Counted from the whole stretch's first letter, positions 47,844 to 53,114 are shown. The stretch is DNA of 60,769 nt, filler included, from Hausera hauseri (GCA_046269625.1; 12 parts of 12 records of this genome joined end to end with filler, not necessarily neighbours in it); one strand, 5' to 3'. Numbers and translations: made by a program. The notes: generated by a model not told the origin, from the sequence alone.

Positions 47844-49440
47844 GTTAAAGAGGCTCTTAACGTAAAAACGGCATAAGTATGGCTATCAGGATGAGAAATT
47901 TTGCCTGTGTCAGAATGTGCCGAAACATCTGGAGGCTTTATGAGTTTTTTGGATGCACAGGATTTATGTTCCTGGATAGAGTAGGATGTGATGGATTAGA
48001 TCGATTAACAAAGGTACAACCTGTAACGCAGTTCTGTGTTTTAGAATTGAATTTATTATGGTATATTTAGATAATATCGGATCGTTTGAAATTGGGAGCA
48101 TAAAATCTGCAACCTAAGCAACATTTAGTGGAGTTGTATTTAAATTTAGTGTGGTAGTAGCACACCACTGATCGTGTAGGTAACCTCGCATGCCTTGAAT
48201 TTTGAGATGAAGTGAGGTTATGGTTTGCATCAATACAATTTCGTCTAGGCATAATCAAAGTTTCGATTTTTGACGTGAATGCAGAAATTGCTTGGTGTAT
48301 GTTGGCGTTTTCAGAACGTAAAGAATTTATCTTGGAGTTCAGATTAGATATGTCGTTAGCCTGTTGAGTTGTTGGTGCTTGTAGCGTAGCGGCTACTAGT
48401 GGGGCTGTATGTTTATGTAATATCTTGTTGCTTTTGTCAGCCAGTTGTGCTAGTTTGTGTAGTGACGATGTGTCCTCTACTATGGTCAACAGTGCACGTA
48501 TGTCTCTAGGTAAAGACTGCAGAAAATATCTGCGTAGTAAATCGGTGTTGTTTGCTTGATTAACGTCAAGAGTACTCAATTGAGTTAATGAGGTTTGAAG
48601 AAATTCTGAGGGTTTCAATGAGTCTATGGTGTTGTCGTTAAAATATTTGTGGATAATGTTATCCAGAGATGGATCCGTGATTTTTAAAATCGAGTTAAAA
48701 ATGTTTTGTATGGTTCACTGCTTTGGAAAATTTCCGACAAGTTGGGAAGCTGCGACTTAATGTTGGATGGCAAAAGTATAAGCAAGTTGTCGACAATATT
48801 ATTGGACTTCAACCAAGCCATATGAAGGTCCAACCACGTCCGGCTGGAATGTTGCTTGTCAACGAAGTATTCTACGCAAGGTAGGTTTACAGTAGACGAC
48901 GAAGGTAAAGGTAAATTTAGCGGTACGCTTATAGTAGGAATGTCGACAAAGTCTTGTTGGTCGTTAGATGAGGCTTTTGGATCGGATCCACCTAACAGAC
49001 GGTAGTGTACAGTCAGTATAGGTGTTGAAGATGAGTGGGTGTAACTTTTTATAATGTCGGATTGTCGGACAAAAGTCCATTAAAACTAAGGCGAAAATTA
49101 ACACGAGTTGTTTGTCGTTGTAACATGCCTGATAATTTTGAAATTGTTGCTGATTTGTGAATGTAGTAGGATTGTGTATGCTTATTTTCGAATAACAAGA
49201 CAAGTGGAACGAAACTGTCACATAAGTCGGCTGTGCAATGTGGCGCATAAGACACTGGCGCGCCAAAATCCCCGCAATGTGTCAGTCGATTTGCCCAACC
49301 GGGGTGGTAAACACTGGAAAAGACGTCCTGCTCCTCCAGCTCGGTTGACGTTTGACGTCGTCGAGTTCTTTAATGTCCCGCGCGCATTCATAATTCAGAA
49401 AAAAGTCATTCTAGCGTCTGTCACCTTTGTTCCTGACACG
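47844..49440 (-). mobile_element. gag: CsRn1-like Gypsy copy F: Ubl-Gag, tandem CHCC, slippery site
   Basis: LVLLFENKHTQSYYIHKSATISKLSGMLQRQTTRVNFRLSFNGLLSDNPTL, frameshift, SYTHSSSTPILTVHYRLLGG|SDPK...VEYFVDKQHSSRTWL. KPSEFL; LLRRYFLQSLP; CYYHTKF..KCCLGC. AAAAAAC at 47944-47950. Confidence 0.9.
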
Positions 49441-50289
49441 ATTACAGTAACTAAGATAGGACGACGTAGTCCAATTTTGACGACATGATCATTCATTATT
49501 TCGGAACCGCCAGCTAAATCAATGGCTCTCAATAATTTGCGAGTCTGTACCCTAATAATTATTGAAAAATCTCGTAGATTCTCACAATGTTGAAGAAGGG
49601 TTGTACTCAAATACTTAAAGTGCATTATGCATCGAAGAAAAGTTGAATCTGAAATTTGTGGACGGGTACTTTTAATAGCATTTATTATGAGATATTTCAG
49701 ATTATCACCTTGTGATATCACCTGGAACATGATATGTATTGGCATAATTTTACAAATTATAATAGAACACAAGTATAATAAATTCACCGACCTTTTTTGG
49801 TTCCTAGCAGGTGATATTCAGAAATGGCCAAATCTGCAACGGTTTTTTATTTGTCATTATTCCTAATTTCCGAAGTTCCAACTTATTTTCTGCTGCAGAG
49901 TTGTCAAGTAATGGTACGCTTACTATCAGGAATCGGTATTGTATTGATACCAGCACATTATCAATTATATGTTCGACTAGATCATGATAATCGTCGTTCA
50001 TCAATCGTCTATCTTTGAATACTTCCAAATGTTGCATTTCAATATTCTAGTATGTTATCGATCTATTTCTTACGCCATTCAATTGTTTCGATAAAAACAT
50101 AATTCAAATAACGTTGAGTAAAATAGACATGGATAATTCAGTCTTTCGAGGTCGCTACGTTTATATCCTTCAAATTCTGCTTGAATGTCTGGCAGAATAA
50201 ACAATCTTCATTCATTGTAAAAATAATATATCCGTACGTAGCATTAATTAAACATAATCCTGGACCATAAAATGTAACACCATACCGCT

Positions 50290-50639: not shown

Positions 50640-50993
50640 TGTCGGTTCTGCCCCACCCCCCAAGGTGCCGCTAGGCACCGTTGCTATGCACATTTTTGCA
50701 CTTTTGACAAATCGATCGCTGAACAATGCAGTATTGATCGAATCGATCGGGACAAATTGCTAATCGATAGAGCACATCGAGGCGCATCGATTGGTGCACT
50801 TTCCAGGTGTGCAGCACATGTGCAGGTGTGCAAAAATCAATAATATTTGATTTCCGATAAATCTAAAATCGATGATTATCACTCGGCACCGGATGCTATG
50901 GGTAGCACACATGACGGGTTATGTGAATGTGCAGTTGTAATTTAAATCGATTGATTGGTTTTAGAATAATTTAAAAATGGGGCAGAACCGCCA
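50640..50993. repeat. 354-bp element with 16-bp terminal inverted repeats, likely an LTR related to the one at 13151
   Basis: TGTCGGTTCTGCCCCA...TGGGGCAGAACCGCCA (15/16 inverted). Its start and ATCGAT/TGCAC-rich composition resemble TGGCGGTTTGGGCCCACCCC at 13151. No TSD seen. Confidence 0.7.
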
Positions 50994-51349
50994 CAGGCCG
51001 TCCGCTATAAATTTTAAATCAATAATCTCAATGTGGCACATACTGGCGTATGCAGTAGACGATATACTTTCGACCAGTGCAAAACTCGAGTGTGGTGTGC
51101 ACTTAAATACGGATGCCAGGGCACTTTTTCACTTTTCACACTTTTGCAGTTGTGCAGCGTAGGATTAATGGAATTGATCGGAATCCATGCAGGTGGATAG
51201 AGCATATGGATTAGCACTCGGCATTGGGTGCATTCGAACACAAACACGGTGTAGTATATAAATGTGCAGTTAGAATTTAAATTTATCGATTAGTTATCGA
51301 TTAATATCGATTGAAAGTGCAAATTAGTTATATTTTCAACATGTTTTTA

Positions 51350-52850
51350 AGCCGTAGGAAGCAAAATTCGATCCAACATTGAACGGGACAGATAGGAAAT
51401 CGACTATGGCAAACTCGAATATCGGGTCGAAAGTTCGAAATTCGAAGATTTTGGAGCTCGAATATCGAAGTTCAAACTATTCGAAAAATCTAACAGCGGA
51501 AGTCGATTCCCCGTATTCGAAAACCCATATGTACATAAAAATTATTCCATGAAAATGTACTATATAGGCATAAAATCAATATTTCGAATTAAGCAAAATG
51601 TGCATTTGAAGCCCAGTGAAGCGGAAATCGATAAATCTAATAGCGGGACAAGATAGGAAGTCATGCATGCTGAATCGGAACATGATGTTATATATTCTAA
51701 TTCGAGCTCACAAGTCGAATACCTAGCTATTCGAACTCGAAACTCGGTCAAGCATGCATTATTCGAAGAATCTAATGACGCCATTCGATTCCCCATGGGC
51801 GAAAACTTACAGGCAATCAATATTAGTGCGGTGCAGTGCACCGCAATGTATTAAAACAAGGTTTAATTACAAGTAAAAAGTACATAAAAATACTAAGTAA
51901 TTAAACGGTGCTTATTTCGATTTCACAATTGACGGTGAAATTTGAGGTGAAGCACACTAAAATCGATAAATCCTTAAGTGCACATAGATAGAAAACCATA
52001 TATGGAGAATCTGAATCCGATGTCAGATATTTGAATACATTATTTTAAATCGAATATTTATCGATTCGAACTCGAAAACTATATCAATTGTGCATTATTC
52101 GATGAATCTGATGGTTTTAATCGATTCTCCATCTGTGAAAACCTTGTATAAAAAATAAAATGCACCACGTTCGATGAATCCTTACCGAGTAAATTAACAT
52201 TGAAAATTTCATAAGTACGTGTGTGTCTGTGTGCACGCGCGCTTTAATTACCTTGATTTTTAAGGTGAGGGGTGCAATAATCGATAAATCTTTAAGCGTA
52301 GATAGATAGGAAATCATGTATGAGGAGTTCGAATATGACGTCAGAACTTCGAATATCGGTTCACAAGTCGAATACTCGAAAAATCGATAAATTCCAGTGC
52401 GCCTATGTTGCTTCACTGTGAATTTCATATGATGATGATGAATCAAATTTGGCGGGTTTATTAATTTTATTCAATTGATGCATTAAAACAAAAATACAGT
52501 ATGTTAGCAATACAAATGCAATATCACGGCAATACATAATTACAGATTCATACATGTGTGATTTATCTTGTCTTTTGTTTGAATTAATCAAATTTCAAAA
52601 TGTGACAAGTTCATGCAATTGATGCATTAAAGCAAAAATGCATTATGTTGACAATGCAACGTGTTGAAAACAATATTCAGTGCCGAATTTACCCTACCAT
52701 TAAAAATTATTTACTTTCATCACATGCGTGTTTTAGTGCATCAATAATCAAATGGAGAATCCTGTTTACAAGTCGAAAACTTGAAAATCGATAAAGGGCG
52801 ACGTTTCACTGTGAATGTCAAGATGGTGAATCAAATTTAGCGGATAAATC
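51350..52850 (+). repeat. Diverged tandem array (about 260-340-bp period, at least 4 units), TCGA-rich
   Basis: The core aatcgataaatc...agatagRaa...tcgaata recurs near 51370 (degenerate), 51627, 51961 and 52279. Confidence 0.65.
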
Positions 52851-53114
52851 AATTTAATTGGTACATTAAAACAACACGTTGGTAGTACAAGTATAATATG
52901 TTGGCAGCAATAAGCGGTGCTTAGTTTACACTACCATTAGAGGGAACTAGTGAGAGAATACATCAGGATTGCAGGGAAGAAAGGAAATATACAAAAAAAT
53001 AAGGAATTATGAGGNNNNNNNNNNNNNNNNNNNNNNNNNNNNNNNNNNNNNNNNNNNNTTAATTAATTAANNNNNNNNNNNNNNNNNNNNNNNNNNNNNN
53101 NNNNNNNNNNNNNN

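Follow-up and report, generated by a model that had tools for sequence, protein, structure and literature searches.

A ubiquitin-derived domain ending in Gly-Gly precedes Gag in a lineage of CsRn1-like Ty3/Gypsy retrotransposons

Introduction

Can a ubiquitin-like (UBL) domain stand in frame before the Gag protein of a long terminal repeat (LTR) retrotransposon and, if so, what might it do there? The question is raised by DNA from Hausera hauseri (GCA_046269625.1; 60,769 nucleotides, 12 parts of the records of this genome joined end to end with filler; this whole stretch is hereafter called the window), in which an earlier note, made from the sequence alone, had read a UBL domain joined through a Gly-Gly (GG) site to the Gag of a Gypsy element. 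Retroviruses and LTR retrotransposons are thought to mature Gag with their own aspartic protease. The note had proposed a UBL-Gag precursor matured by host deubiquitinases. Here, we consider whether the domain is real, whether it is related to ubiquitin, how it is distributed and conserved among relatives of the element, and which of several explanations of its presence agrees best with these observations.

Results

The domain in the window

The element copy is located on the minus strand and, by translation, consists of three open frames in succession (pieces A, B, and C), with a fourth stretch. The features from the start of the first open piece to the linker, together with pieces C and the fourth stretch, are as follows.

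49369-49052 (-): piece A, open piece, the last part of which is the first two thirds of the ubiquitin-like domain
49079-48687 (-): piece B, open piece, opening with the last third of the domain and RLLGG
48714-48070 (-): piece C, open piece, Gag core
48066-47941 (-): fourth stretch, coming after an in-frame TAA
49207-48987 (-): ubiquitin-like domain as a whole, 76 residues, ending in RLLGG, with one frame break inside
49207-49052 (-): domain part 1 (PLVLLFE...NPTL; strands 1-2, helix, strands 3-4), from translation, family profile positions 14-52, and tblastn with residues 96-145 of protein P0001
49070-49052 (-): frame break 1, within the domain; tblastn frame switch between 49070 and 49055
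49051-49049 (-): TAA closing the first frame, from the stop list
49046-48987 (-): domain part 2 (SYTH...RLLGG; strand 5 and tail), family profile positions 56-81
48992-48987 (-): Gly-Gly codons, with a Ser codon next
48986-48879 (-): linker rich in Ser, Pro, and Asp, 36 residues, from GG to Gag, from translation

The residues quoted in the earlier note are present on the minus strand exactly as given there; the one frameshift that it corrected for is seen in tblastn as a single frame change inside the domain, at about 49070-49055, and GG is indeed followed by Ser, not Met.

A family profile was made from 31 domains from other genomes, none of them from the window. The read-through of the window, with X placed at the frame break, scores 29.2 bits against this profile (E 6.8e-9). 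Among the 152 stop-to-stop pieces of the region, pieces B and A take ranks 1 and 2 (E 0.0017 and 0.0057; the rest are at 0.2 or above), and they match the profile in the correct order. In tblastn, protein P0001, the nearest intact relative, aligns in order and in three frames: residues 96-145 to 49216-49070, residues 154-275 to 49055-48702, and residues 276-514 to 48702-47968. Piece B through GG is aligned by phmmer to proteins P0003 (7e-21), P0001 (4.5e-19), and P0004 (4e-12). Piece C, compared with 1.84 billion representative proteins, has 358 relatives (best 7.5e-57), the nearest of which carry an N-terminal domain of about 76 residues that ends in GG and reads straight on into Gag.

With the three open pieces of the window, neither ubiquitin (up to E 10) nor any family of retrotransposon Gag was matched in Pfam. 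When pieces A and B were used in word-indexed searches of proteins, there was no match, partly due to a length filter; P0001 gave only two relatives in such a search. From the profile and alignment results we conclude that the ubiquitin-like domain in the window is real, beyond chance.

Kinship with ubiquitin

A metagenome scan with the P0014 subfamily gave 18 loci (denoted by L below), while a scan with P0153 found nothing. The Pfam ubiquitin family (PF00240) is matched in the domain position by P0028 (3.7e-23), L006 (6.6e-24), and L013 (1.4e-24); P0139 is above the Pfam cut-off for ubiquitin; and five further relatives have sub-threshold ubiquitin matches in the same place. Residues 1-76 of the L013 domain align to residues 1-76 of ubiquitin at about 2e-32, with an identity of about 78% (59 of 76 residues, a hand count on the alignment), and Gag comes directly after GG. 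For P0001, the PF00240 match is absent in Pfam, and a sequence search against PDB gave no match. Profile-profile comparison by hhalign yields 98.3% and 1.2e-14 for the diverged domains against the true-ubiquitin domains; 96.8% and 2.5e-10 for the subfamily of the window against the diverged domains; and only 68.9% and 4.5e-5 for the subfamily of the window directly against true ubiquitin.

The fold was modelled on P0001, which is 47-51% identical to the window in Gag. The AlphaFold2 model has predicted strands at residues 100-105 and 109-114, a helix at 121-132, and strands at 137-141, 144-146, and 162-168, with a predicted local distance difference test score (pLDDT) of 72-89; the topology strand-strand-helix-strand-strand-strand is in the ubiquitin order. 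The best PDB matches are ubiquitin, SUMO, NEDD8, and ISG15, with a target-normalised template modelling (TM) score of 0.75-0.82, a root-mean-square deviation of about 2 A, and 72-79 aligned columns. Residues 172-207, the stretch matching the linker of the window, are predicted to be disordered (pLDDT below 50), and helical Gag lies beyond them. As a control, the model was also made from an alignment from which the rows passing the Pfam ubiquitin cut-off had been removed, with three rows keeping weak matches; this model has the same topology, and it is once more best matched by structures of ubiquitin and UBL proteins, with Arc capsid domains matching its Gag part. The beta-grasp fold expected by the earlier note is hence seen in the P0001 model, in its matches to ubiquitin, SUMO, NEDD8, and ISG15, and in the control. 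Together, the sequence profiles and the predicted structure show the domain to be ubiquitin-derived, with a beta-grasp fold.

Architecture, tail conservation, and selection

In intact relatives, the domain, GG, the linker, and Gag are read in a single frame. Among the 150 best Gag relatives (of the 358), 24 carry the domain, and nearly all of the closest ones are among them. The order of the gag frame in this lineage is a variable leader; a beta-grasp domain with R-L-x-G-G as its C-terminal end; about 20-45 residues of disordered linker; and Gag, which comprises an N-terminal part of the DUF7041 type (present in 15 of 17 relatives), capsid-like helices, a coiled coil, and two CHCC knuckles. 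Pol comes next in the -1 frame.

When 17 and 22 full-length proteins are aligned, only 10-12 columns are invariant, and both Gly are among these. GG is kept in 31 of 31 domains; in the same set, Arg is found at ubiquitin position 72 in 23 domains, and Leu, Ile, or Val at position 73 in 30. The tail of the window, RLLGG, follows the R-L-x-G-G pattern. The ratio of nonsynonymous to synonymous substitution rates (dN/dS) is not near 1 in the domain: it equals 0.44 for the pair L001/L002 and 0.31 for L006/L013, with 0.09 and 0.04, respectively, for the Gag core. The domain values are rough, being based on 76 codons, and more divergent pairs are saturated.

The earlier note had set beforehand four observations that should tell against it, namely no beta-grasp similarity, intact copies lacking a continuous UBL-Gag frame, dN/dS near 1, and GG not conserved across the family. 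None of the four was observed in the relatives from other genomes, which supports its overall reading.

Distribution on the Gag tree

The Gag tree comprises 66 rows and is based on the Gag core only, with the window row bearing X at the break. It falls into two halves, with support 99 each: one of 25 rows, which lack the domain except for P0139, and one of 41 rows, which holds all other domain-bearing rows. The window clade has five rows (support 99), formed by P0151, P0001, P0153, P0007, and the window itself, with the domain in every row. This distribution fits a single old acquisition of the domain.

L016, which has true ubiquitin, is sister (support 98) to L008 and L011, whose diverged type also occurs in more distant cousins. 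Elements with near-canonical ubiquitin also include P0028, L006, and L013, and their Gag cores are near those of elements with a diverged domain. Since related Gag cores occur with either ubiquitin type, close relatives appear to have exchanged the module or captured it anew, an indication that canonical ubiquitin and the diverged copy serve the same purpose.

P0139 (786 amino acids) combines a RING finger and a ubiquitin domain with a strongly matched DUF7041 Gag (1.4e-28). An independent capture would explain this protein, as would a domesticated gene or a chimeric gene model.

Type of the element

In each of the 18 metagenome loci, the Gag frame overlaps, in the -1 frame, with a second one that spans about 1100 residues and contains RVT_1, RT_RNaseH_2, Integrase_H2C2, and rve; in L005 and L009 these domains are in the order listed, which is the Ty3/Gypsy order. 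The contigs have the order Pol, short non-coding stretch, Gag, Pol, as expected if an assembler passes through one LTR. None of the contigs resembled human DNA. In the window, the piece that holds the element stops at 47844, just beyond gag, and the Pol order is known from the related loci. The Gag of the P0001 model consists of a helical region and knuckles, with Arc capsid matches at a target TM score of 0.5-0.61. The assignment to Gypsy made in the earlier note agrees both with the Pol of the related loci and with the CHCC knuckle.

The signature CX2HX9CX3C is a hallmark of the CsRn1 clade (PMC2582038). The elements of this clade (CsRn1, PwRn1, AgCR, and Kabuki), known from invertebrate animals, are similar to the family described here in having a CHCC Gag that is unusually conserved and, in many of them, a gag-pol overlap with a -1 frameshift (PMC2582038). 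However, that paper mentions ubiquitin 0 times, and the tRNA-Trp primer-binding site of the clade was not matched in the window, where up to 3 mismatches were allowed, or in any of the 18 loci. The element is therefore termed CsRn1-like, and is not filed as a member of the clade, because the CHCC knuckle is present but the tRNA-Trp site was not found. The best explanation of the locus in the window, judged from its sequence and that of its relatives, is that a degenerate Ty3/Gypsy LTR retrotransposon copy, with a Gag of the CHCC CsRn1-like type, is present there with its 5' part.

The open leader upstream of the domain

In natural ubiquitin precursors the ubiquitin part starts at Met1. This is not a trait of the family or of the window: Met is found at ubiquitin position 1 only in L013, and the other loci have Phe or Ile. 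In nine loci, where the DNA has 20-32% G+C, 94-268 codons of open gag frame precede the domain (e.g., L001:2489-2953 and L010:1211-2014). No stop interrupts this open leader in the nine loci, whereas the two alternative frames of this DNA have 68 and 139; in six of the nine, an in-frame Met precedes the domain by about 120-135 codons.

A conserved motif, TGGTGTCAGAAG, is found in 13 loci (including L001:2759, L004:1979, L006:1274, L010:1598, and L016:4058) inside the open frame, where it encodes the peptide KWCQK; it is often lengthened to TGGGATTCGAA, as in L004 and L007. TGGTGTCAGAAG may be the complement of a tRNA-Leu 3' end, which would make it a candidate primer-binding site. It looks like a primer-binding site that differs from the tRNA-Trp site of CsRn1. 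The open frame suggests a translated leader encoded by the LTR, the primer-binding site, and the leader region. To the precursor proposed in the earlier note this adds that the domain is usually not at the very N-terminus and has an open leader ahead of it.

Layout and decay of the window copy

The remaining features of the copy, from Gag to the edge of the piece, are given below.

48878-48687 (-): Gag N-terminal part, DUF7041-like, starting CVEYFVD...W; its frame is shared with GG, phmmer against relatives
48714-48687 (-): frame break 2, separating the Gag N-terminal part from the remainder of the protein; the open pieces overlap, tblastn frame switch at 48702
48702-48070 (-): Gag core, helical capsid-like region, from the protein search with piece C
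48366-48256 (-): coiled coil in the Gag core, coordinates from translation
48162-48109 (-): first CHCC knuckle, CX2HX9CX3C (C-YY-H-9 residues-C-CLG-C), from translation
48069-48067 (-): in-frame TAA at the position of the first Cys of the second CHCC knuckle of relatives, by comparison with these
48066-47941 (-): rest of the second knuckle and Gag C-terminus; the end ...PKNS resembles the ...KN ends of the family, tblastn with P0001 to residue 514
47995-47846 (-): open frame set back by one base relative to gag, whose end it overlaps; possible pol start, stopped by the edge of the piece

The last of these frames contains an SKKLIxPP motif in the same place as SKKLIsPP in the Pol frames of related loci, with similarity that is not significant (E 0.13); it is possibly the start of pol, which would fit the -1 overlap of gag and pol. 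No in-frame ATG follows the stop at 49372-49370 before the domain begins. The copy in the window is dead, given its two frame changes, the in-frame stop, and the lack of an in-frame ATG ahead of the domain. Base composition shifts at about 49250-49300. An LTR pair was not found in the piece, which holds only the 5' side of the element, and no convincing primer-binding site or LTR boundary could be placed in the window.

Surroundings and database entries

Upstream of the element and on the same strand, 50625-50248 (-) encodes a fourth Ig-like domain of the TMEM131L type (Pfam PF24499, 4.3e-12), an exon of a host gene. Judged from this exon, the element lies inside or beside a TMEM131-like host gene of an animal. 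The open frames 49804-50037 (-) and 49395-49787 (-) have no family match, and might or might not be exons as well. The region 50650-52900, where TCGAAT-like words are abundant, is occupied by degenerate direct repeats at intervals of about 335 bases; the repeat families are 50874/51209, 51601/51936/52254, and 51478/51760/52096. They are missed by Tandem Repeats Finder because the copies are only 60-80% alike.

In P0006, P0012, P0151, and one other member of the alignment, domain-Gag is joined to segments of host proteins (histone H2A, cohesin SA HEAT repeats, an Rrp44 cold-shock domain, and a CNOT1 domain). Such database proteins are probably gene-prediction chimeras at insertion sites.

Discussion

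Cleavage by host deubiquitinases and its alternatives

By analogy with known ubiquitin fusions, we consider it fairly probable that host deubiquitinases cut after GG and free Gag, so that the ubiquitin-derived domain is a processing module. The enzymes would recognise the beta-grasp body and the RLxGG tail, and the cut would give Gag and Gag-Pol a defined N-terminus. The same cut would discard the domain and a leader peptide translated from the LTR, primer-binding site, and leader region; that is, if translation does start upstream, a peptide of arbitrary sequence would be removed along with the domain. The domain may also help expression or folding, as in ubiquitin-ribosomal protein fusions. 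A wider proposal is that, in a clade of animal Ty3/Gypsy elements, a captured host ubiquitin has become a heritable processing module run by deubiquitinases, with translation from the LTR, primer-binding site, and leader region, the leader and domain being cut off without use of the element's protease, and the module being interchangeable and renewed by swapping or re-capture. This proposal is tentative, and taken as a whole we would lean slightly against it.

Several points weigh against processing by deubiquitinases. Cleavage after GG is something that we infer, and its recognition in the diverged domains, where little is kept beyond the fold pattern and the tail, is not assured. The domain evolves far faster than the Gag core (amino acid identity 33-57% versus 69-84%; dN/dS 0.31-0.44 versus 0.04-0.09). 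The residue after GG is variable (S, N, G, M, A, T, D, K), and some of these residues are destabilising at an exposed N-terminus according to the N-end rule. The upstream leader may be without translation. The two domain pieces of the window itself have no Pfam ubiquitin match (PF00240), and all the intact evidence is from other genomes, none of it from that of the window, the closest relative being 47-51% identical in Gag.

Alternatively, the domain may stay on Gag as a cis-acting ubiquitin signal that recruits ESCRT (endosomal sorting complexes required for transport), trafficking, or proteasome-shuttle factors to Gag or particles. Permanently attached UBL domains are usually without a GG tail of this kind, while the invariant GG with conserved R72 and L73 is the signature of cleaved or conjugated ubiquitin-like proteins; moreover, the domain body, which partners would read, is the least conserved part, and a disordered linker comes right after GG. 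We thus regard a permanent signal as unlikely, even though uncleaved UBLs beside retroelement-derived domains do exist, the UBLs of Ddi1 and Ddi2 being among the fold matches, and though ubiquitin fused to retroviral Gag is reported to be able to replace late domains (PMC2958808). It might also be that the released ubiquitin or ubiquitin-like protein is itself the product, be it extra ubiquitin for particles, a decoy, or a conjugatable modifier, with Gag as a co-expressed partner. Near-canonical ubiquitin in some elements would agree with this, as would the occurrence of true ubiquitin or a diverged domain among close relatives, which looks like renewal by swapping or re-capture. Still, most lineages, including that of the window, are too diverged for likely activation by the ubiquitin-activating enzyme (E1), selection on the domain body is weak, and a released product would add to the cleavage model rather than exclude it. 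Baculoviruses and similar viruses do encode their own ubiquitin, which favours the idea of a product; nevertheless, we give it a rather small chance, somewhat below that of the attached signal. Cleavage accounts better than either of these explanations for the invariant GG and for a body under weak constraint.

Finally, the domain could be an artefact, either a frame in the 5' untranslated region that is open by chance or the outcome of chimeric gene models joining a host ubiquitin gene to a transposon. Several of the database proteins are evident chimeras, in which host sequence (histone H2A in P0006, cohesin HEAT repeats in P0012) lies upstream, and the copy in the window is broken. However, the junction domain-GG-linker-FFLD...W is in frame in the raw DNA of at least 12 separate metagenome contigs, where gene models are not involved, and the profile and fold evidence and dN/dS below 1 also speak against an artefact, which we consider extremely improbable.

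Comparison with known systems

UBA52, RPS27A, and polyubiquitin are similar to the family in that a cargo continues the frame of a beta-grasp domain with a terminal GG; FAU/FUBI and SDE2 are further cellular precursors with a ubiquitin-like fusion. Precursors of the UBA52/RPS27A type start at Met1, whereas in the retrotransposon family Met1 is seen only in L013, most elements have an open leader, and the cargo is the capsid protein. Ddi1 and Ddi2 likewise have a ubiquitin-like beta-grasp domain N-terminal to a retroelement-type domain, and their UBL structures are matched by the P0001 fold; the Ddi1 UBL, however, is a permanent binding module without a processed GG, in a host gene, and its partner is a protease, not Gag. 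Cellular ubiquitin precursors are processed by UCHL3, USP9X, USP7, USP5, and OTULIN (PMC4522658), and ubiquitin is required for productive expression of eL40 (PMC6721733).

In cytopathogenic pestiviruses (bovine viral diarrhea virus (BVDV) Osloss, CP1, CP Rit), the nearest parallel to the family, host-derived ubiquitin is in frame directly before a viral protein that needs a free N-terminus. In CP Rit the inserted ubiquitin is internal, with foreign residues ahead of it and its first three residues missing, and cellular hydrolases cut it, making the NS3 N-terminus (PMC8310069). Ubiquitin C-terminal hydrolases cut after GG in the pestivirus insertions; in the retrotransposon family we infer the same cut. 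Pestivirus ubiquitin occurs in sporadic recombinants of an RNA virus, in individual animals, before a protease/helicase, whereas the retrotransposon module is fixed, inherited over a clade, located before Gag, and mostly far diverged from ubiquitin. Engineered ubiquitin-Gag retroviral fusions resemble the family in that ubiquitin joined to Gag is reported to affect particle release (PMC2958808, PMC3751857); they are laboratory constructs, mostly C-terminal and non-cleavable, and not natural features of genomes.

Novelty and meaning

Searches of the full-text literature brought up neither a natural fusion of ubiquitin, or of a ubiquitin-like domain, to LTR retrotransposon Gag nor any paper that deals with DUF7041; the databases Repbase, Dfam, GyDB, and InterPro were outside this search. 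Proteins with the domain-Gag layout are already present, unnamed, in public databases. Gypsy Gag and ubiquitin-fusion processing are each known; their combination as a conserved design is apparently undescribed, with moderate certainty as to priority.

For annotators, the family offers an explanation of "ubiquitin-like domain proteins" that are really transposon Gags. It also provides a natural series of ubiquitin variants that begins at about 78% identity and extends to domains no longer recognisable by sequence, all with the RLxGG tail kept, which could help define the minimal needs of deubiquitinases. If cleavage after GG is true, a clade that routinely gives one maturation cut to the host ubiquitin system would represent a new strategy of retroelements and the natural, fixed equivalent of what in pestiviruses are sporadic ubiquitin insertions, and would provide a direct, testable link between Gag and ubiquitin biology.

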